A DNA stretch of 63,765 nt, counting the filler, from Klebsormidium nitens (Eukaryota; Plantae; Klebsormidiophyceae): assembly GCA_000708835.1 (NCBI GenBank). It is 6 parts of 6 records of this genome, joined end to end, with 100 filler letters (N's around TTAATTAATTAA, not from the genome) between each part and the next. Parts side by side here need not be neighbours in the genome. Positions count along the whole stretch, not along the records: positions 1 to 9,197 come from DF238208.1; 5 more parts are not named here. One strand, given 5' to 3'. Below the pieces are notes generated by a model. The model was not told the origin of the DNA. It saw only the letters and a program-made list of their open reading frames with translations, and did not search any database. Position numbers and translations under genes: made by a program. Below, piece by piece: positions 1-20,229 of the stretch. Position 1 is the first letter of the stretch. Each line of letters begins with the position of its first letter.

Positions 1-702
1 AAAATAGAAAGGATAGTAGCCGGCCTTTTCGGGTGATCGGCCACACTGCCACTCAGGTCTGAGTTCGGTGTGAGCCACATATCCTGGCCAAGATCGCCAC
101 GTGGTGTCTGGCACGCGATTTCATGGCGTCACAACCCTCAAAATATGTCCACATAAACAGCCCCTTAGATGCTCGTACCGGTCCGTACCGGTCCGAAACA
201 CACACACTCTGGAGTGGTATACGGTAGCTAATGTCGACATTGTCGACAAGGCCAGTCTCGGCCTCAGCCTCCTCACCAACCCCTATTTTGCTGAGTTTCA
301 GACTCAATAACCGTCCGACACAGTGCCATTATCCACCAAAAAGGCTTCTATACTTCCGACGTCGATACTTCTTGTCATGGTTTCTGGCTCCTCATTCGTT
401 TGCGACTCAAGCTTACCGAAAAGGACAAACAGAATTTGGTAGAGAAGGGAATGATGCCAATTAGAAATTCTGCCTGACAGCCTGATAGCTTCAAAGCATC
501 AAAAAAAACTCGAGTCACCAGAAGACGGAATGTTAGTTCTTCCGTAGAGCCTTTTAGAGAGTCTGCTGCTGGGATGCTGTAGCGTCTCTGTTCCTAAGGA
601 ACCTGCCTAAAGCACTGCCGTTTCGTTGCAGAGACGTTGAAGGCCTGAGTGGCTCTTTCCGTAAGAGAGTCCACAGCCAGTCACCAACAATTCACACCTC
701 CA

Positions 703-3700
703 ATGGGGAGACGTTATTGCTCCGTCACCCTTTTCTGGTTGGCGTCCCTGGTCGTGCTGTGCCCAGCGCTCTTGGCTCAACCAGAGACGGCTGTAACCAT
801 TTGCTCCGGTCAAGCCGGGGCCTGCGTGGTTCGCAACGGCAATCTTCCGGATTTCCCATGGGACGGCCCGTGCTCGTGCTTGACCAAGGTGGTCAATCTA
901 ACCCTCGTTGACCAGGGCATCATCCACCTGCCCGTGACGTGGGCCTCCCCGGGGGCCTTCCCCGAGCTGCGGCTTCTCAACCTCACCTTCAACAGAATCA
1001 ACGACCTTCCCCCCAGGTGGGGCGCCCCGGCGGCATTTCCCAAGCTTGCGCAACTCTGGGCCTCCTTCAACCGGGTGCAAATGCTTCCCGCTGAGTGGGG
1101 TACCAACGGGGCATTCCCGGCGCTGGTTGAGCTGCGCCTTGGGTCAAACCAGATCAGCTTCCTACCAGACGCCCCCGCCTCCTTGCCCTTCTTCCCCTCC
1201 CTTCGGACATTCTCCCTTTCGAGGAACCAAATCACCGGGATCCTCCCGGCATCGTGGGGGCAGCGCGGGGCCTTCACCCAGCTTCGGTTGCTGTCTTTGA
1301 TCGAAAACAGCATCAGCGAACTTCCCGCATTGTGGGGCGCGGCGGGCTCCTTTCCGCAGCTTACAGTTTTGGTGCTGGACAATAACAGCATCGCGGCTCT
1401 TCCGGAAACCTGGGGCACCAATGGCGGCTTCCCCAAGCTGCAGGAGTTGTCATTGGACCAGAATCGGATTGCTGCGTTTCCAGCTTCTTGGGCGACCAAC
1501 ACCACTTTCCAGTCCTTACAGACACTTACTTTGGTTGACAACCAGCTGACGACTCTGCAAGACAGTTGGGGAAGCTTGTCCACATTCCCCGCGCTGCAAC
1601 AGCTGTCGCTGGATGGGAACCGCATCGCCGCTCTTCCGAGTGCCTGGGGGAGCCCTTTCCGCTTTCCGGTGCTCTCGAAGCTGCGGCTGGTGAACAACGC
1701 CATCGCGTCAGTGCCCGCCACGTGGACCACTCCGGGGGCATTCCCGAACCTCGCCACCCTCGTGCTGGAAAACAACCTGCTGACGAAGGCTCCGGCAGTC
1801 AGCTCCGCTGCCACATGGCCGTCCCTGCTGCTCTTGTCCCTTAGCGGAAACCGGATTGCCGAGTTGCCGGCGGGATGGGGCACCCCAGGGCTGTTTTCCA
1901 ACCTCCGGTTTCTTGAGATCGGGAACAACAGTCTCACTCGTCTCCCCCCTTCTTGGTCCGGCCCAAACATTTTCCCGAGTTTGAGTAAGCTGGACATCTC
2001 GGGTGGGCAGCTAGAGGAGTTGCCAGACGCGTTCTTCGCGAACGGCTCCTTGTCCAATCTTGTTAATGTCGACGCTTCGGGGAACCATATTTCTGCCCTT
2101 CCGAGCGCCTGGGGAACGCCCGGGAGAACATCCTACATCATTGACTTGAACCTGGCGAACAATAGGATTGCCACACTGCCCGCAAATTGGGGGCTCAATA
2201 ACACGTTCCCCTCCCTCTTGAAGTGGAACCTAAGCAATAACCTGATCGAGGAGCTTCCCGCGTCATACAGCGACGGACGCTTCACCGTACTGTCGTCGTT
2301 AGACCTGGCAGGAAACAGGATCCGCACCCTGCCGATAGAGTGGGGCTTCAAGCGCGCGTTTCGACCACTAAACATGCTTAACATCAGCGGCAACGGTGTC
2401 ACAAAGATTCCCAACAGCTGGGCGTTTCTGACGTCAGGGAACAATTCCTTCCCGGTGAGACGCTTCTCTGCCATGTTTCTGCAATTGACCAGTTTGCTTC
2501 GGGATCTTTGAACAATCCGAGACGGTCAGCTGACATCAGATTGGTGTAGCGTGCCGCTCTTTGTTCATGTAATATACTTCTACAGTACGTGAGATGCGGA
2601 AATGGTAGCTTCGTTCAAAGTGTCCACCCAAAGTTTGCAGAAAACCTCGAACGTCGGTTCTCACTCGCACTGTTTCAAGACACTAGGACTCCTTTCATAA
2701 GAGGACAGAAAAACAGTGGTAAAGACCCCGTCTCTCAGGTATCAAGTGTTCTTTCAATGTGACTCCCGTAATCATCAAGACGGACCAAGCCTCACGTAAT
2801 GTCCTGACCGTCCGCCGTTTTCGTGTCCGCAGAGCATGGACGAGCTCACCCTTTCGGATACCCCTGCACTCGCGGGCAGAAAGATCGAGTCAGTCCTCCC
2901 CGGGTTCTGGACCCGCTGCATCCAGTCCGGCGCCTACGGGTGCGCCGTCAACTTCCTCGGTAGCAACCTGAGCACCCAAGTGTCGGCCGGCGTCAAGCGC
3001 CAAGTTTGCTTCAGCAACATCACGGTACTCTTCCGGGGGCCCCCGGGATACGAGCTGCCGCGGCGCACCAACCCGGCTGTTGGCCGTGGATTGGTGCCTA
3101 TCGTCCAACTCGACGAGATCGATTTGGGCCCCGAGGGGGCCCATTTGACGGGCCTCCGGTTCCCCCCCCGGCCGGGCAACTTATGCCGCAACGCGCGCGC
3201 CGCGCTCGTGATCGGGCTCATGTGGGGATCAACCGGAGGGGCTCTCCTGCTTGGCATGATCGTCCTGCGAGTGTGGCACGCCTTCAAGCCGTTCGAGCCT
3301 CCCGCGTCGGGGGGCGCGCGGGCACACAGCTGGCATAAGGGCGCACGCCTCTTCCTCTGGGGCATCGGCGGCGCAGCCTGGCACGTGATCGACCTGGCGC
3401 TCGACCTGCGAGTGCTGCGCGATGTGTGGATTCAACGGCTCGACACGTGGGTTAAGTGGGTCTTGCTGGCGTTCATCATCGCGCAATACGCTGTTGCCGG
3501 GCTCTTTCTTGGGGCGTCTTGGTGGGGCGAGGCCTGGAGCGTGCCGCGCGGCGCCGCCGTGAAGCCTGGCGCCAAGCGGGCGGTTGTTGGCTTTCACTGG
3601 TGGCTGGTGGCAGACTACGCGTACTCCCACCCGGGGGCCCCGGCGCCGGTGGGCCTCCGACAATTGTGTTGGGCGGTTGCCACGTGGCCGATTGCGGTTG

Positions 3701-4143
3701 CAGCCGCGGTTGTTCTTGACGCGGCTGCAATCTTGTTGCGCTTCGGCGTTCACCCAGTGGTTTGGGGGAAGGTCGTTTCTCTGGACGCCTATGTCGCCGC
3801 CCGGGGCCTGGTTGAGGAGCTGTTCGAGGCGGTTCCGCAGGCGATCCTGCAGAGCGCGCTGTACTTGCTGGGCAACTCCGCGGCGACCAATTACTACATC
3901 GACGACGCGATCTTCATTCCGTCGCTCATATGGAGTCTCTTGTCGCTCCTGAAGTGTCTTTTGGGTAAGTATAAGGATGCGCTAGCCGTGGGCACGTTGG
4001 CGCCCAAATCCGTGTGGTACGAGCTCAGAAACATGTGCCCCTTGTTCATCGACCGGGGGGGCGTGCGCTCCGGCACCGGGGAGGAGGCCAACGCTGAGGA
4101 GGACATGGTGAAGGATAAATACCCCTTGGCCACATTTGCTTGA
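703..4143 (+). CDS. Signal peptide + about 20 LRRs + TM helix + XK-related (Xkr scramblase-like) multi-pass domain; spliced, with exons about 703-2454 and 2833-4143 and a possible small internal exon
   Basis: ATG at 703 is followed by hydrophobic VTLFWLASLVVLCPALLA. 26-aa repeats have consensus LPxxWGxxGAFPxLxxLxLxxNxI. A phase-0 donor CCG|GTGAGA at 2455 is compatible with a phase-0 acceptor CCGCAG| at 2832. The second exon has WHVIDLALDLRVL, EELFEAVPQAILQ and SLIWSLLSLL, which match XK-family motifs. Confidence 0.75.
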
Positions 4144-4538
4144 CGGTCCGCTTTCAAAATAGCGTGATACATGAAGTATGCAAGAAACACTAAAATCCTA
4201 AACCTGCCTCATAGCGCCAGCTCCAGTGCAGCAATACGTTGGGCTCTGTCCTTTTGGTTCAGTTGAGACAAAATGAGCAAAATGAACGCACATTGACCAC
4301 ATCACACGTCATGTAAGTGTCTGAATAATGGTGAGCATGTCACACATTAGGCATAAAGTGTCGAATGATGGTGAGCATGTTCCACATCCGGCAATGGCAA
4401 GACATGATGATGAACATGCCCTATCAGACCAGAACAGGGACTGATTAAGAACATGTCCTACATCAGATTCAGGCAACGAATGAAGCAGAATATGTTCCAC
4501 ATTGCCCAACCCTAAGACCCTAAAGCCAAAGCAAGGGG

Positions 4539-4679
4539 GTGAAAATGCTACAAACATGTTCAGCGTCAAGCAGTGAGTGAAAATGTCTGCAAACATGTTT
4601 AGTGTCATGCACAAGGTGAAAAATGCTACAAACATGTTCAGTGTCATGCAGTGAGTGACAATGTCTGCAAACATGTTTA
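4539..4679 (+). repeat. Minisatellite, 38-39-bp unit, about 3.6 copies with alternating variants
   Basis: Units alternate between gtgaaaatgctacaaacatgttcag.gtca.gcagtga and gtga.aatgtctgcaaacatgttta. Confidence 0.8.
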
Positions 4680-4876
4680 AGGATACAGGGAGTCACGGTG
4701 GTCTCTATCCATAATCTTAGACAAGGCATTGACAAAATCAACCAGGAACTGACTATTACTAGTCCATACTCCTTTGCATGCTACTATAACTCAAATCTTA
4801 CGTCTCGGGAAATACCTTGTTGATGAGTTAACAGTCAAAATGGTCACTGTTACATTAGCTGGTGTACTGTGTACCC

Positions 4877-4925
4877 CGAGTTTGGGATGCAACCACCGGC
4901 GAGCGTCTGCGTGTGCTCCCTAGGG
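4877..4925 (+). pseudogene. Isolated WD40-repeat fragment
   Basis: VWDATTGERLRVL is nearly identical to the repeats of the 8572-9197 gene (LWDSVTGERLRVL, ISDAATGERLRVL). No flanking repeat sequence is present. Confidence 0.55.
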
Positions 4926-5856
4926 CCAAGCAGAGGTTCAAGCGTTTAGCAGGCTCAGCCGCCGCAATGCATGCTTCAAAAAGAACATCCAGTCTTTCAC
5001 GGCATGCGGTCCATGTAATCTGCACTCTGTCGGCACGTGCGGGTATATTGACAGATGCCGGGGGATAGGATAAGAGGAAGCCAGAAAAGAGCATCGCAGA
5101 CGCACTTTAATATTGGATATTCCGCCATATTCTGTGGGCCCGTCTGTCCGGTGTGCGCGATTGGAAATTTTGGAAATGATATCGTAGCTTGCCGCCAACG
5201 TGCATCTGGCTTGGTATCCATCTTTCCGCTCATATCTTGCAACGACGGATGAGGTGGCCGACAAGGGGGCCCATGACGGAAATGATGGTGAACATGTTCC
5301 ATGTCAAGAAAGGGGAAGAGATGACCCGTAAACATGTCTCCCTCAGGAAGATACAAAGCATGCTGTGTGATGTTTACTGTGAGCGGTGTGCATCCACAAC
5401 GATATACTGGTACTCTTTAGACACATTGACTACATTACACGACATGTAAGGGTCTGAATGATGGTGAGCATGTCACACATCAGGCAAAAGTCTGGAATGA
5501 TGTTGAACATGTTCAACATCAGGCAATGGCGGGACATGATGGTGACCGTGTCCCTATCAGAATAACACAGGGACTGATCAAGAAAATGTCCTACATCAGG
5601 CAATCAGGATATGTTCCCAATTGCCTAAGCCTAACAAAATCCTCTTTCCCCCTTCATTGCGACACAAATTGTTTATTTACCAACCATCTAAATTACGTGC
5701 AACAATACAACACCTGATGTGAAATTCGCTAGAAATCTCAGGTTGCACATCTCGAGCAACCATGGACTTTCATTCCCTCACAAGTTGCTTCGATGCTCCA
5801 CATTCGAATAATCTTATGGCGAAAAGGTCTCTCTCTGCTTTTCTTTGAGGGGCCTC

Positions 5857-6416
5857 TCAAACTCCACTTGCAGGAAGCTGAACCTTCCCTGCAGAATCTA
5901 CAGCTTCCAACAACTTCCCCTTGTAGTACATCTGTTGCGTGGATGAATCCCACGACATCCCAGGGATCTTAGCTGTGCCAACCACTTCGGATGACAGGTA
6001 GTACCTGATCTTGAGGCCACTCATATCAAGGCCGCCGTACTTGATGGCCACAAGCTCTAGCACCAAAACAATGCTCATGGCAATTGCAATTGCCAGGTTC
6101 TTTCCTGATGGCTCAAGAATGAAGTAGAATAGAAAGAAGAGCAGGGCCACAAAAAGCCCACAGCCAGCTGTCAGACAATCAAGCACAAGTAAAGGGACTG
6201 CTAAATAGTAACGTGCAAATTGCAGTTTCTCCCATGCAGAGGCTGCTTCCCCTTCCGGCAGGCGCGCAATAGATGGTCCCCTGTCACACTCAGAACAATG
6301 TCCTCAGTGGGTGTGTGTGTGCTTGTTATTACAGTCCCATACCATGAACCCGCAGCAACCGTGTAGCCATGGCCTCCAGGTGGAAGACACCAGGTGACTC
6401 CAAGAAGGAAAGCCAT
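5857..6416 (-). CDS. Hypothetical small two-TM membrane protein, possibly two exons
   Basis: ORF 6186-5857 has two hydrophobic segments (GLFVALLFFLFYFIL and LAIAIAMSIVLVLELVAI) after an acceptor-like TGTCTGACAG. ORF 6416-6201 could be exon 1, but its donor is weak. Confidence 0.3.
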
Positions 6417-7067
6417 CTTTGGGCCTGATCAACCAGAAAACAGCATCTGAATCAGGGGGGGGGTAAAGGAAATAAGTTTGCAGAAGGTTTCAGATGCGCC
6501 AGCAGATATTTGAGCGCAAGAGCGGGAGCTATATCCTCGAGATAATCGGGAGTGGACCGGCGGATCCAACACTTCATCTAATGACTCGGAGATGCTGCCT
6601 AAAGACTTTAGCTGCTCAGTGTCCTAAAGAATTTTGTTTTGTTTTGAGAATGTAGGGCCTTAGTTTGACAAGGGTTAGGAAGTCTAAGTTAGTCTAGAAG
6701 CTTGCAAATGGGTGCCTCTCTTAGGGTTACAGCTGTCAGAAACTCTTTCCCCGACAGATTCGGAAAGGGTCACTCAACCGTGGCACACAGTCTGAAACTA
6801 CTGCCAAACAAAAATTGAGGTTAATTTGGAAGGGGAAATGTGGAAATTTGGGGCGCTCCCCCTCATGAACACCCTCGGCAATCATCATCCCCTGTCCGTG
6901 AATCATGCAGAACTCCCCCCGAACCGGATGTGTCCCCCAGATGTCGCTTCTGTCTTTAAACGACAGGGTACCCTAAAACCCACTTTTGCCACCTTAACCA
7001 ACCCATTCTGCACCGTTGAGCCCGCCATTAGTACACCTTTAATCTAAGAAATCCTGAAAGCCTAAGT

Positions 7068-7356
7068 GATGCAAGTCTTGACCAGAGCCATGTGGACCAT
7101 GAAATGATGCAAGTCATGACCACAGTCATTTGGCAACATAAATGATGCTGGTCATAACCACAGTCATTTGGACGTAGAATGATGCAAGTCAAGACCAGAG
7201 TCATTTGGACTAAAGACTGAAGCTCGTCATGACCACAGTCATGTGGACCATAGAATGATGCAAGTCATGACCACAGTCATCTGGCGACATGAATGATGCC
7301 TGTCATAACCACAGTTATTTGGACGTAGAATGATGCAAGTCAAGACCAGAGTCAGA
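7068..7356 (+). repeat. Minisatellite, about 38-bp unit, about 7.6 copies with a four-unit higher-order period
   Basis: Consensus gatgcaagtcatgaccacagtcatttggacNtagaat. Units 2/6, 3/7 and 4/8 share diagnostic variants. Confidence 0.9.
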
Positions 7357-7541
7357 GCAGACTGCAATGATTGCTGCAGAGCCAGCAGCCTTGACTCAAG
7401 GAAATGACGCAATCAAGTTGGCCGTAATGATCAGGCGTGATCAGCATAACACAGCCCAGTTGGCTGCTGTTGCTGCACAGATGGCCCGCCCAAGTACGAT
7501 GCACATGACTCCCGTCCAGGTATAATCTGGATCAACCACGA

Positions 7542-7838
7542 TCACACGAGGCGTAGCCGTTTTGCACCGCCTCCCGTATGGTCAGCGTGTGGCCCGGATA
7601 ACGAGATACGACATCCACCCCCATGGCCGTCCCCCAGCCGATCAAATTCTGTCAATACAGCCTTGTCTCGGACCTCAAACGTTCCAATCTGAATGGTGGG
7701 AGGCGGGGGAGGGGCAGGGGCAGGGGCAGGGGCAGGGGCAGGGGCAGGGGCGGGAGGTCGATCTCTGTCGCGGCAGCATAGGCAGTCTGCAATGAAGGAT
7801 GTCGCATTGGCGAACCAGTTGCAGATTACCTGCATCAT
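7542..7838 (-). CDS. Possible small protein with a (Pro-Ala)n linker encoded by a (GGGGCA)n tract
   Basis: Reads MMQVICNWFANATSFIADCLCCRDRDRPPAPAPAPAPAPAPAPPPPPT. The hexamer tract lies at about 7704-7752. No homology recognised. Confidence 0.25.
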   Translation of the reverse strand: MMQVICNWFANATSFIADCLCCRDRDRPPAPAPAPAPAPAPAPPPPPTIQIGTFEVRDKAVLTEFDRLGDGHGGGCRISLSGPHADHTGGGAKRLRLV

Positions 7839-8166
7839 TATAGCCTGGAGTCCACTTTTGACACCCACACCCACACCCACATCACCACCCTCTTTCAAGC
7901 CATATAACGATGTAAGAAAAGGGCGAAAATGGTAATAAAGAAGAGTTTTTTTCTTTTTTCTACTTAGGGGCTGTATTGAGACCGCGCGCCCAATATAAAC
8001 CGTCGGTCGGGTTTACGGCCCGGCGAGCAGGTGCGACGCGGCCGCTTCGGTCAGCGGGAGCCCCCTTAGGTGCACGTGAAGGGCGTTCAGGGAATGGGGC
8101 AGTGCACTGTGAGTTATCTCGGTCATTTCGGCGCTCATCTGACGCTCAGACTCACTGGCATGTGCA

Positions 8167-9197
8167 ATGGAGGTAGCGCTGGCAAATTCTGCAGCCAAAA
8201 AGCTAATCTCTGCCGTTCAGATGCTGCAGGCAGCCGTGGCAGCAGCGGACCAGAACAATCATAAATGTCAGATGATTGTGGACGAGGTGGCCGCCAAGGC
8301 CCCTTTTATTAGAGACATACTAAAAGAGGCAAGGCACTTTGAGGATGAAGACCTCAACAGAAGCATGGCGCTGAATTTGCAGTTAGCGGTAGATGCAGTT
8401 CAAGAAGCAACAATGGCAGTTTACCGGTGGCTAGCAAAACCATTCTACAAGCGGATGGGAGCCTCTCAGGCTTTCCAACCAGCTCTGAAGAATGCTAAAG
8501 AACGCATGTATGCACGACTGGCTGCCATCACGGCGCATCAAATACACCGCATTGATAGGAGGTCAGAGTAAATGGCCCAGCTGGCTGGCAGGTATGACGA
8601 CATAAGCCGCATCTTTGAGGGGCTGCTCTCTGGGACTAGATTGGAGGCGACAAAGAAGTGCACAGTTGCAATCGGAAGGGCCCAGATCGAGCAAGCTAGC
8701 AAGCATGGACAGAGCTTGCGTGGCCACACCGCAAATGTCAGATTCATCGCCTGGAGCCCTGAGGGGGGCAAAGTTGCCACGGCGTCAGCTGACAACACGT
8801 GCGCGCTTTGGGACTCCGTGACGGGGGAGCGCCTCAGGGTGCTGGAGGGTACCTTAGATCATACGATTATTGGGTGGAACCCTGACGGGAGCAGACTGTC
8901 GACAGGGACAATTAGTTTTTTAGGCCCCCCCAAAGGCGCCATCTGGAACGCCGCGACAGGGGAGCGTCTCAGCGTTGTGAAGGGCTGGATCCCCTGGAGC
9001 ATCATGCCACGGGACTATATTGATGGGCGTCTTGAAGGAAGGGTCTTGAGCCCCGACAGGAGCAAACTGGCGACAATGTTAGATGACAAGAGGGTGGCAA
9101 TTTCGGACGCCGCAACTGGGGAGCGCCTCAGGGTGCTGGAGGGCCACACCGGTCTTGTTCATTGCATCTGCTGGAGCCCCGATGGGAGCAGCATCGC
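8167..9197 (+). pseudogene. MLKL/RPW8-like N-terminal four-helix bundle + WD40 repeats, interrupted by one in-frame TAA (8569-8571) and truncated by the gap
   Basis: ORFs 8167-8571 and 8572- are in the same frame (GAG TAA ATG). The N-terminal helical pattern AAADQNNHKCQMIVDEV...AVDAVQEATMAVYRWLAKPFYKR resembles MLKL/RPW8/MCAfunc bundles. WD40 units include GHTANVRFIAWSPEGGKVATASADNTCALWD and GHTGLVHCICWSPDG. Confidence 0.65.
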
Positions 9198-15800: not shown

Positions 15801-18398
15801 TCGGCTCCTCTCGAGGGGAGCCGCTCGTGAAATACTGCGGTGCAACTCTGGTTCGTGGCCCGGTTTTCTTTTCTTGATAAAGTCCGCACTGCTCCATGCC
15901 TTGACGAATGAGGTTTAACTCCGCGCATGCCGGTGCCTGTAAGGCGCCCTTACGGGCTGTCCATCTGCACGACTTTGTTCCGCATCAAAGGCTTCCATGC
16001 ATATTCTGCTTCATTCCAATGGCGAGACCCAGAGAGTTGCACCTCCCCGACGCATCCCAAGGACTCGCTCCCACTGCGACTACAGTTCTCTGCTTTTCCG
16101 TCGCTGATCTTGTACTGATTTGCACTGCGCAGGGCTCCGGGTTTGGCGCGTCGCGGCCGTCGCACCAGGGGCTGGAGTCGCAGGTGTTCCAGTGGCTGAT
16201 CAAGGACACGATCGCCGCAGACGACGCGCTGGCCAGCTCCTTCCTCAACCGGCTGTTTAACATGCTCAACTGGACCGTCACCGAGTTCAGCGTCGCCATG
16301 AAGGAGATGCAGGACCTGCTCGCGCGCCGCCAGGTGAGGCCACGTGGCAGCGCACCCACAGCAGCAGAGGGGTTTTAAATTCTATGTTTCGCTACTTTCT
16401 TTTTGACTGGATGAAGGTCGAATGGCCGTTCGCGCTTGTTTTGCTGTGGAAACCCTTGGCAGGCTTGTCAGGTACTAACAGAAGGTTCTCTGAGACGTCC
16501 GCACCAGAACCGGTCAGTAACATCGCGCGGTTGGCAAGGACTACTGGTAGTGCCTTTTCTTCTCAGGGAAATGGATCATTCAGTTTCTGTCTTATCCTTC
16601 AGTCGCGTCTCTCGGTTCCATGCCTCTCTCCTCCTTTTCAGTCCTGCTCTCCTGCTTCTGAGTCCTTCCTCGTTATAGTCCCTCCCTCCTTTGCAATCCC
16701 TCTTCCCCCCCCTGGATCCTTTTGTCTACTCGGTTCTTCTCTCCTCCTTTTCTGTTTTTCTCCTCGTTTTCATTTCGTCTTCCCTCTTTCCGATCGCGCT
16801 GTCCTCCTTCTCAGCCCCCTTCTCCCGCCTGCCCGCAGGTCCCCGAGCTGCAGCAGCGCAAGTGCGCCATCATGTTTGAGCTGAGCTGCAATCTGGAGCG
16901 CATCCTGGAGTTCCTCTCGCAGGAGCTGCCCGGCCTCTTCCTCGCGGGGCCCGAGATGAACCTCAGCCGCCTCTGCGAGCTCATCACCTTCGTGCTCAAC
17001 CACACCACCGCCGGGCCCGACGCGGGCCTCTTTGACCGGTGAGCGTGCTGCGCTTGCCCTGTCAAACAGTGTGTTGGTTGCAGAGTCTCCGTGGCTGGGA
17101 CGCAGCCACGTGCTAGCCTTGAAGATCCAGAAGTCCAGGTCAAACGCGGTGCGCGGGACCCTTGATTGGTGATGGCACCTTGCCTGCTGTCGGTGCCCTG
17201 TCTGCTGTCGAATACCTACCAAAGAGGGGAAACTCAACCAGCTTTTCTTGCTGTTTTGGGAGGCCGGGCCGGTTAGGTTTTGACTGCTTGGAACATGATT
17301 CCAGCGGCATCGGCCTTTTCACGTCGTTCATTTCTGCCCAACACGACCTGGGTGGAATACTTTAAAGAGAAGTTCCGTTCTGAACCGCAGACTTAATAAT
17401 AAAGAATAAATTCTGACCCTTCCCATTCTGCCTCCCTTGTAGGACCCTCCGGCTGCAGATGCAGTCCCTGGAGAAGATCAGCCGCCCCATGATTTTGGCC
17501 CCCCTCATCGGGATCGTCATCAACCTTGCGGCCGCCCCTACGCGCGTGCGGGGGCTGCAGCACGACATTGTGCGCGCGCTCGCGGCCGCCGACGCGACGG
17601 CCGGGTCGAGCGCCAACTTCGATTACTTGCTCGAGTTCAACTGGGGGGACGCGTTCAAGGGGGATCCCTCGCTGCACCGCGTGGCGGAGCTCAAGAGCTT
17701 CGTGCGGCGTTACAAGCAGGTGCGGGAAGCGAGAATCCTTTCTTGCATTGGAAGACGACTCGATAGTGGATGTAGAGAGTTGTGCGGTGTGGAAGACTGC
17801 GTGTTACGTTTGCTTAGGCTGTCTTTCGAAAAGAGCGAGCATAACATCGTGAGGTTTGTATTCTTCTAAGAGGATTCTCGTCGGGCAATCAGCACGGAAG
17901 TTTAGCGGCCGGAAAAGCAGAAGTGTCCGTCGTTTGAATCTCACAAGGCTGTTTCATCGTCTAATGCTCTCTCTGGTCAACTACTAAAGAAGTCATCTCC
18001 TTGAGAAAGTGTGGTGTTTCAAAATCATGGCACCGAAGCGCATGTTTCTCGTGTCGATGTGAATCCTGTCAAAACCAAGGGCGTCCATATCTGGGGATCA
18101 GCTGACACTTCGTTCGACGCAGGAACTTGAGGACCTGCGGCAGCGCAATGCCGACGAGAAGGATCGAAAAGCTGCCGCCAAAGGCAAGGCTGTGGTTGAT
18201 TCTGTTGGGGCCACCGAGGATGGGGATCAGATGGACGAAGACGGGGAGCTTTGTCCCATATGCTATGCGTACGAGGTAGACACAGTGTTTGAGCCGTGCT
18301 TGCACGAATCGTGCAAGCGGTGCATCTCGCGGCATTTGCTCAACAACAAACGATGTTTCTTTTGCAACGCGGAAGTGACCGAGCTAGTAAGCAAATAG
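9831..18398 (+). CDS. RKP: E3 ubiquitin ligase RKP / KPC1 (RNF123) ortholog with SPRY domain and C-terminal C3HC4 RING; about 10 exons (9831-10362, 10683-10919, 11131-12197, 12604-13976, 14347-14485, 15353-15658, 16133-16333, 16839-17038, 17443-17719, 18123-18398)
   Basis: SPRY motifs [25 protein letters not shown]|IQQIGWAT and [15 protein letters not shown]; [16 protein letters not shown]; [46 protein letters not shown] junctions are phase-compatible. Confidence 0.93.
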
Positions 18399-20229
18399 CG
18401 TTTGGTCGATCGTCTAGAGGGTGATAGGTATGTGTGTGTTTTGAGTCTCTGGCGACCGGATCTTGCTTTGTATAAATAAGATGCGCAACAGACTTCCACG
18501 AAGATATAGAATAGTAAACACTCGTTGCAGCTAAGTGGCCCTGCAGGAAGCAGAATCTGTGGTTTGTAAACAGACTGCACGCTGTATATGCTTTTACCAG
18601 TGCTGTTATCACACAACCCGCTGGCCAAGTACGGTCGATCATGAGTGAACCTGCACGTCCTTGATTACCGGGAATCATGCGATGGCTGGCCCTAGGACTA
18701 CAGATATCAATCATTGATGGTTGTCCAGAACCTTAGAAATGCACCGTAGGAAAGGCCAAACATGCATGCTTACTTTTAAGAGCCATGTAATATCGCGAGT
18801 GCTCAATGTTTCAATTATAGGCATTTCGTAAACCGCAATCATTAATTAACTGCAATCAAGGAGCTACAATATATTGCAGTATTGATACGTGCGAGCATAC
18901 CATGGCAGGGCACTCAGATGCTTGCATGGGCGCGCGCAGCGAAGGACTCTGATTCGGTGAATTGCCGCGGCATGGGCCGGGTTTGCAACAGGCTGTTAAG
19001 TTCAAGCTGCCTAGCTGACCTGGGCACGCGTGCGAACATGAAGCCTGACGGCCTGTTAATTGCACATGATGCTCAGATTGACGTGCATGGATTCTCACAT
19101 GCATGTGCATTTTGGACATATGACTTACGTTATAAACATTGGGCCTGCCAGCTGACTTCTCAGAGTATGAACTTGGCTGATCCTTCAACAATTGGATAGA
19201 TCCTGGCTTGAGCTCTTCTCATGCACCTTATGGCGAGCTCCTTGCAGATGATGTGCATCACACATAAGCTAACTCGATCTATAGCTGACAGTGACACCCC
19301 TTGGCACCTAGGGTTTTTCAAGATGAGATAGCATATGCATAATCTCAACTCAAGTTCGGTTTGAGTGTTCATTTCTGGATCGATCGTTTGAAGAAAACGA
19401 ACGGGATACAGACCATATGTAAGGGTAACCACAACACTCAATGCCTCTCAAAAACATAGTTGGCATCGAGCACCTACTGTACAGACAAACCCCCGATTCA
19501 ACTCCCCCCATAGCTACGAGTTTCTATTCTTCCGTGCTTGAGAAAATAACGAAAACATCCACTTTCCCCTCGTCAAATCCCACTCACTTGCGACCAAAGC
19601 ATGGGCAGGTCAAGTCGGGATCAGCTGCTTCCAGGCCTGACTATGTGCAGGATTTGCTGGAGCTGCTTCATGATGACTTGGACCCATTGGATACTCATGT
19701 GCGACTGTATAAGCGCACAGGTATCCGCCCCATCTCTTTGATCCACTTTGAAGATCTTCGGGTCGCGGCACCTGCCAGAACCTCCATCTTACCCAAGATG
19801 TGCAAGACGGAGATCCAAGATAGCAGGTGCCTTACCGACCTCAGGCGCCACCAGGAGCACTAGCACCTGCAGATCCACCATAAGAGGGTTCGAGGATGTC
19901 CTTTGGCACGTTTTGAATTCCCTATGTTGCTCTACTACACCCACTGGTTATCTGGTAGCTTTACGGAGCCTATCTGCAAGGGGTGATCTCTGAACAGATG
20001 CAGAAGTTTATGCGCTTGCATCAATGAAAGCAACAATTACGGGGCTCAGAATTTGGAAACGACACGGGTCGCTTCTTCAGACCATGAGCTCAACGCGTTC
20101 GAAATGCAGTGAGACCTCACGGAATGATCTAAGCTCCGCCAAGATCCAGATGCGAAATGGATAGCCTAATGACGAGGATTATCAGCATTAGCATCACTCA
20201 CAGTGATCAATGCCCCTGACCCGCTCAAG

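Follow-up and report, generated by a model that had tools for sequence, protein, structure and literature searches.

A two-exon gene of the alga Klebsormidium nitens encodes a leucine-rich-repeat surface protein with a membrane domain resembling the N-terminal repeat of XKR scramblases

The XKR scramblases (XKR8, XKR9, XKR4, CED-8 and XK) are mainly known from animals and expose phosphatidylserine on dying cells. Here we describe a gene of the streptophyte alga Klebsormidium nitens in which an ectodomain of leucine-rich repeats (LRRs) precedes a multi-pass membrane domain that resembles one half of such a scramblase. The gene occupies positions 703–4143 on the plus strand of the analysed DNA, a stretch of 63,765 nt made of six joined record parts of one genome assembly (the window), and lies in the part at 1–9197. 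All coordinates refer to the window, and all features of the gene are on the plus strand. Its public product is GAQ93027.1.

XKR9, XKR8 and XKR4 are built from two related repeats, N-terminal (ND) and C-terminal (CD), each comprising four transmembrane (TM) helices and an inner-leaflet helix (PMC8298096, PMC12334663). The hallmark of the family is a cluster of buried acidic residues that the ND carries on TM1 and TM3 (PMC8298096), and all six residues essential for scrambling by XKR8, i.e. D26, D30, K/R134, E137, E141 and R183, are situated within the ND (PMC8500837). In hXkr4, the equivalent residues D125, D129 and E313, the last adjoining the helix break at P316, give rise to a negatively charged surface within the membrane that has been proposed to thin the bilayer (PMC12334663). 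With these proteins GAQ93027.1 shares the predicted fold of the N-terminal repeat, a TM1 that starts in the cytoplasm, and the motifs DxxxD (TM1) and ExxxExxPQ (TM3 equivalent), spaced as D26, D30, E137 and E141 of XKR8. Unlike them, it has a domain of only one repeat (about 220 aa versus about 340), has neither the C-terminal repeat nor the regulatory helix with the caspase site, carries an additional preceding TM helix and a large LRR ectodomain, shows a similarity that stays below the Pfam threshold, and comes from a streptophyte alga and not from an animal.

The extracellular part invites comparison with plant LRR receptor-like kinases (LRR-RLKs, e.g. FLS2) and receptor-like proteins (RLPs), with which GAQ93027.1 has in common a signal peptide, an LRR solenoid, a juxtamembrane Cys region and a TM helix. 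However, the kinase domain of LRR-RLKs is missing, and the short tail that follows the TM helix in RLPs is replaced by a multi-pass bundle of about 220 aa. Furthermore, plant LRR receptors use the plant-specific LRR of 24 aa, a length also found in other members of the family described here, whereas the units of GAQ93027.1 have 26 aa and the signature LPxxWGxxxxFP. By analogy only, the complex of XKR8 with basigin or neuroplastin is also similar, consisting of an XKR-type bundle and a single-pass helix that bears an extracellular domain. There, however, two distinct proteins are involved, the ectodomain belongs to the immunoglobulin type and the helix contacts alpha-9 of the C-terminal repeat (PMC8500837), while in GAQ93027.1 helix and ectodomain are fused ahead of the ND-like repeat. 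In full-text literature searches we came across neither an LRR-XKR fusion nor a family built on a single XKR-like repeat, nor any report of XKR relatives in algae, streptophyte ones included, or in plants. As outlined below, the membrane domain is probably a distant relative of the XKR N-terminal repeat.

One spliced gene for a type-I surface protein

The part at 1–9197 contains two long plus-strand open reading frames (ORFs) in the same frame, 649–2511 and 2836–4143, the first ATG of the upstream one being at 703. By translation and splice-site sequence, 703–2454 and 2833–4143 form a single two-exon gene. Exon 1 closes at 2454 on a complete codon and GTGAGA follows; the phase 0 intron (2455–2832, 378 nt) ends with CCGCAG, exon 2 resumes in the same frame at 2833, and the stop codon is at 4141–4143. 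Retention of the intron would lead exon 1 to a stop at 2509–2511. The joined product of 584 + 436 = 1020 aa is residue-for-residue identical to GAQ93027.1 (A0A1Y1IWB9), which is publicly named "L domain-like superfamily protein" of Klebsormidium nitens, is encoded on a 9197-bp scaffold, and turned up as P0002 in our exhaustive HMMER search.

The protein begins, as does GAQ93027.1, with the start codon and a hydrophobic, signal-peptide-like N-terminus (703–780; MGRRYCSVTLFWLASLVVLCPALLAQ) that was recognised by hydropathy and translation. The LRR ectodomain extends from 889 to the end of exon 1 at 2454 and comprises about 20 units of 26 aa. Nineteen units follow each other at a regular spacing of 25–27 aa with the consensus LxxLxLxxNxIxxLPxxWGxxxxFPx, flanked by one degenerate unit on each side, and Pfam identifies the region with LRR_4 (E 3.5e-46) and LRR_8 (E 2.1e-40). 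Searches with NCBIfam returned only a generic LRR similarity to bacterial effectors and no match for the membrane part. This 26-aa LPxxWG type of repeat is common to GAQ93027.1 and its homologue P0023, while most members of the family have ordinary 24-aa plant-type LRRs.

Exon 2 opens with the last degenerate LRR and a conserved, Cys-containing extracellular stalk that ends in GNLCxN, a motif invariant across the family (2833–3195); it can be aligned with P0001 and other members from FW..C onwards. The Cys of the NLC motif is present in all 82 of the 82 members covering this position. The stalk proper (2905–3195) spans about 100 aa from the LRRs to the first TM helix and has four Cys as well as an IDLGPxG and a GNLCxN motif. 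It matches no Pfam family and may be a separate domain.

A single TM helix, TM0, leads from outside to inside (3202–3276); it is evident from hydropathy and corresponds to helix 8–36 of the AlphaFold model (pLDDT 97–98, predicted local distance difference test). The loop that follows (3277–3330) is rich in R, K and H and is cytoplasmic according to the positive-inside rule. Next comes the membrane domain resembling the XKR N-terminal repeat (3331–3990), a bundle of about 220 aa comprising TM1, TM2, a loop with a buried helix and two more TM helices; the AlphaFold models show five helices after TM0. The protein ends with a short, Lys-rich tail of 50 residues, which is predicted to be cytoplasmic and is followed by the stop codon (3991–4143); Pfam finds nothing in this stretch. 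Pfam scans detected no kinase in GAQ93027.1 or in 61 family members, and no other known cytoplasmic domain in GAQ93027.1.

An earlier, sequence-only reading of this DNA had proposed that a signal peptide and about 20 LRRs, each 26 aa long, are followed by one TM helix and then by a multi-pass region with XK-type signatures, the parts being joined through phase-compatible splice sites. These elements are all borne out: the hydrophobic start after ATG 703, the 19 regular units with their degenerate neighbours, and the hydrophobic helix at 3202–3276 are as described above, the signatures DLALD, EELFEAVPQAILQ and SLIWSLLSLL are all located in the membrane region of the exon 2 product, and the GT..AG intron in phase 0 restores the public protein. 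The proposed fusion of LRR and membrane parts likewise stands, in view of the public protein, the position of the intron inside an LRR unit, and homologues found as single ORFs or as a transcript.

The exon junction falls within an LRR unit (NNSFP followed by S MDELTLS), and the corresponding stretch is unbroken in P0023 (SFPSLNQLRLS). In P0001 and P0023, both from metagenomic eukaryotic contigs, LRRs, stalk and membrane domain lie within one unbroken ORF, and a Trinity transcript of Klebsormidium subtile (P0006) has the parts in the same order. Together with the public gene model, the split unit and these homologues identify the LRR and membrane parts as one protein. Moreover, homologues have the stalk on the outside of the cell, between the LRRs and the TM helix, so that this part of exon 2 depends on the signal peptide of exon 1.

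One might still imagine two genes at this locus, one for a secreted LRR protein ending at 2509–2511 and one for a membrane protein starting at ATG 2836, considering that each ORF is open by itself and that exon 2 starts one codon ahead of this ATG. In addition, no public RNA-seq run is listed with the locus, and coverage was zero with the contigs of four runs labelled as this species, a point that counts against the spliced model. Nevertheless, two genes can scarcely be credited. Canonical splice sites join the exons in phase, and the junction divides an LRR unit exactly. A protein starting at 2836 would be without a signal peptide, yet the counterparts of its first 120 residues in homologues are extracellular. 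Finally, LRRs reside in the same protein in 39 of 61 longer family members, among them several single unbroken ORFs and one transcript assembly. Hence, 703–4143 encodes one spliced type-I surface protein.

Relationship of the membrane domain to the XKR N-terminal repeat

With a basic loop after TM0, TM1 starts on the cytoplasmic side, just as it does in XKRs. From an alignment of 33 family sequences, AlphaFold2 produced a confident model of P0002:700-1005, with a pLDDT of 84.6 and a predicted TM-score (pTM; here template modelling) of 0.81, and a second, likewise confident AlphaFold model had a pLDDT of 87.7. With both models, XKR9, XKR4 and XKR8 were the top three structural matches among 48,161 chains, and the best structural alignment spans residues 1–190 of rXKR9. 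The models display the fold of the N-terminal repeat (TM1-TM2-IH1-TM3-TM4) and not the two-repeat arrangement (ND plus CD, with eight TM helices and inserted helices). Because only the ND half matches, the domain amounts to a single XKR-type repeat that follows an additional TM helix, and not to a full XKR.

At the level of sequence, PF09815 is the best Pfam match for the exon 2 product (E 0.0048; E 0.0029 for the domain alone; 16.4–17.1 bits), and GAQ93027.1 covers only positions 4–190 of the 337 positions of this profile. P0043, about 25% identical in the domain, matches PF09815 in the same register (positions 3–174; E 2.4e-4, 20.6 bits). Language-model feature searches with GAQ93027.1 and the divergent P0092 gave PF09815 as the sole Pfam family among the listed clusters of both, ranking first for GAQ93027.1 and third for P0092; these results are leads only. 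A word-index protein search found a single relative with exon 2; repeated with alignment A3 and a cut-off of E 10, it returned family members only, none of them annotated with PF09815.

The two acidic motifs of the membrane domain are spaced as in XKR8 (residue numbers in the following are those of the exon-2 ORF). DLALD on TM1 (D186, D190; 3391–3405) has the DxxxD spacing of hXKR8 D26 and D30. EELFEAVPQ on the TM3-equivalent helix (E327, E331, P334, Q335; 3814–3840) follows the pattern E-x3-E-x2-P-Q, which is the spacing of hXKR8 E137, E141 and, by inference, P144; R323 is located one turn ahead of E327. The structural alignment with XKR8 starts with model residue 53 at chain residue 7, and a gap-free TM1 would put model residues 72 and 76, i.e. 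D186 and D190, onto 26 and 30. Conservation was computed over 90–110 family domains. G346 is Gly in 98% and P334 is Pro in 89%, and the position of D295 on the buried helix is acidic (Asp or Glu) in 98%. The positions D186 and D190 are Asp in 58% and 61%, respectively, E327 is Glu in 50%, and E331 is Glu in 24% and otherwise mostly Q, N or R.

Several observations weigh against a relationship with XKRs. The PF09815 scores of 16–21 bits do not attain the Pfam gathering threshold of 24.8 bits, and only two of 33 family domains match this profile at E < 1, the other 31 not at all. No XKR was found among the PDB chain sequences by phmmer or profile hmmsearch using exon 2, alignments A3 and A5 or the P0043 core. 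Foldseek returned nothing significant against the PDB; the XKR entries had the best probability and TM-score, but these TM-scores were only 0.27–0.33, and the two structural models overlap largely in their alignments and are thus not fully independent. With regard to the activity considered below, the residue equivalence with XKR8 was derived from alignment end-points and motif spacing, and the family retains Glu at E331 in just 24% and Asp at D186 and D190 in about 60%.

These observations raise the question of whether the membrane domain might be an unrelated helical bundle that resembles the XKR ND by chance or convergence, the protein then being LRR receptor-like with a novel multi-pass domain. 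The absence of an above-threshold Pfam match, the 31 of 33 members without a PF09815 match, the failure to find a PDB chain by sequence and the non-significant Foldseek result would all be expected in this case. We consider it quite improbable, since four kinds of evidence converge on the same family, namely the Pfam register in two divergent members, the language-model features, the structural top three and the motif spacing, and since the membrane topology is that of XKRs.

The kinship with XKRs had been suggested by the sequence-only reading, along with a HMMER search against PF09815 and an AlphaFold and Foldseek comparison as ways to check it. It stands in part. PF09815 is the best match but falls short of the threshold, so that GAQ93027.1 does not count as an XK family member by the Pfam criterion; XKRs are the top structural matches of two models but without significance in Foldseek; and the likeness, motif spacing included, is confined to the first half of an XKR. 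Judged from the profile searches, the sequence evidence for the XK link is weak, while the structural evidence, taken from predicted models, is the stronger of the two. An XKR-ND-like fold with matching motifs is well supported. Of all known families, XK/XKR is the one that the membrane part resembles most; the link is genuine, though distant and confined to one half of the XKR fold.

A shape search of the ESM Atlas also brought up CD20/MS4A (0.36–0.42), which we judged to be a generic four-helix resemblance. Its first match was a cluster of 194-aa diatom proteins with a TM-score of 0.66 as given by the match. The ESM Atlas clusters of short proteins (about 190–270 aa) with a likeness to the domain come from Foraminifera, Mucoromycota, Mollusca and diatoms, and some of them are partly annotated with PF09815. 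This suggests that half-size XK-like proteins devoid of LRRs are widespread in eukaryotes.

Possible output of the membrane domain

According to our working model, the membrane domain itself would be the output of a receptor-like protein. Its acidic motifs and the helix-breaking Pro may create a hydrophilic, membrane-thinning path as in XKR8 and Xkr4. Regulated local thinning of the bilayer accompanied by lipid scrambling would be the most likely activity, because the residues lining this path in XKR8 and Xkr4 are all found in the ND. Two half-XKR domains probably pair as a pseudo-symmetric unit resembling ND and CD, and such pairing could be driven or altered by LRR ectodomains that bind a ligand or each other. 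A receptor-gated scramblase, as put forward by the sequence-only reading, would be a plausible designation. To the reading as a whole, an LRR receptor-like protein whose half-XKR domain thins the bilayer or scrambles lipids, with half domains pairing in the manner of ND and CD, we assign a probability of roughly 0.45.

The same gene with the same half-XKR domain may, however, serve a purpose other than scrambling, e.g. as a multi-pass anchor, for the docking of a partner, as a cation-binding or ion-conducting module, or as a signalling scaffold. There are precedents for docking, as XK pairs with VPS13A and XKR8 with basigin. Of the two XKR repeats, GAQ93027.1 has a single one, and most family members lack the second Glu of the motif. 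For many members of the XKR family the function is still elusive (PMC8298096), and the authors of the XKR9 study noted that the buried acidic cluster is distantly like a divalent-cation site (PMC8298096). The missing C-terminal repeat is at the same time an objection to scrambling, as are the elusive functions within the family and the location of the lipid cavities C1 and C2 of XKRs at the ND-CD interface. A non-scrambling role is a serious possibility, albeit one we rate somewhat below scrambling: all six residues essential for scrambling in XKR8 belong to the ND (PMC8500837), the spacing of the four acidic positions is kept in GAQ93027.1, and D295, acidic in nearly the whole family, as well as the polar PQ motif within the membrane helices point beyond a mere anchor.

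Returning to bilayer thinning and scrambling, a bolder version can be conceived, in which the domain is a single-repeat XKR form of the kind that, by duplication, could have given rise to the two-repeat fold of animals, and in which two copies form a unit able to scramble only once their LRR ectodomains have come together. We regard this version as rather unlikely.

The finding touches both the gating of XKRs and the origin of the two-repeat fold. A half-size XKR-like domain with motifs spaced as in XKR8 offers a naturally reduced system for testing how scrambling works, and its connection to an extracellular LRR sensor in a streptophyte alga close to the land-plant lineage suggests a type of receptor output, acting directly on the bilayer, outside the kinase-centred picture of plant LRR receptors. 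If scrambling is indeed assembled through ectodomains, loss of lipid asymmetry would be the direct output of a receptor, requiring neither a kinase nor a second messenger, and scrambling of the XKR type would be much older and more widespread than animal apoptosis.

Family members and surrounding sequence

The exhaustive search yielded 113 representative clusters at E up to 1e-3, 56 of them at E up to 1e-10. This family, to which the gene belongs, occurs in algae and other microbial eukaryotes and has so far gone unannotated; no Pfam model captures its membrane domain. Among the 61 longer members, 39 of which contain LRR domains as stated above, Pfam revealed no other recurring type of ectodomain or cytoplasmic domain. 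A count of paralogues, also called for by the sequence-only reading, gave at least seven in K. nitens by the family search (GAQ93027, GAQ78274, GAQ78110, GAQ80901, GAQ78170, GAQ84842 and GAQ81742). The remaining members stem from eukaryotic metagenome contigs and from assemblies of public sequencing runs.

Two of the paralogues, P0008 (GAQ78274.1) and P0014 (GAQ78170.1), bear the public name "LRR receptor-like serine/threonine-protein kinase FLS2". Their names look wrong, since Pfam finds only LRRs and no kinase in them and since they end in an XKR-ND-like membrane domain. Several K. nitens paralogues appear to be mislabelled at present, either as FLS2-like kinases or as "L domain-like" proteins. 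The contig of P0001 (L001) carries fragments of a 14-3-3 gene in exon-like pieces on the minus strand (17614–18828 of that contig), which fits a eukaryotic, probably algal origin of this contig.

Downstream of the K. nitens gene, a WD40-repeat gene on the plus strand (8167–9197) is truncated by the scaffold end; Pfam WD40 matches 8572–9195 with E 1.8e-17. It consists of two ORFs in the same frame, 8167–8571 and 8572 onwards, separated by a single stop that may mark a small intron or a break in the model. The AT-richer intergenic stretch downstream of the LRR gene contains tandem arrays at 4539–4677, 5456–5552 and 7067–7354, with units of 38–39 nt, up to 7.6 copies and 76–91% matches. A (GGGGCA)n microsatellite of about 8 copies is found at 7705–7751; translated in spurious ORFs of either strand, it gives a run of poly-(Gly-Ala) or poly-(Pro-Ala).

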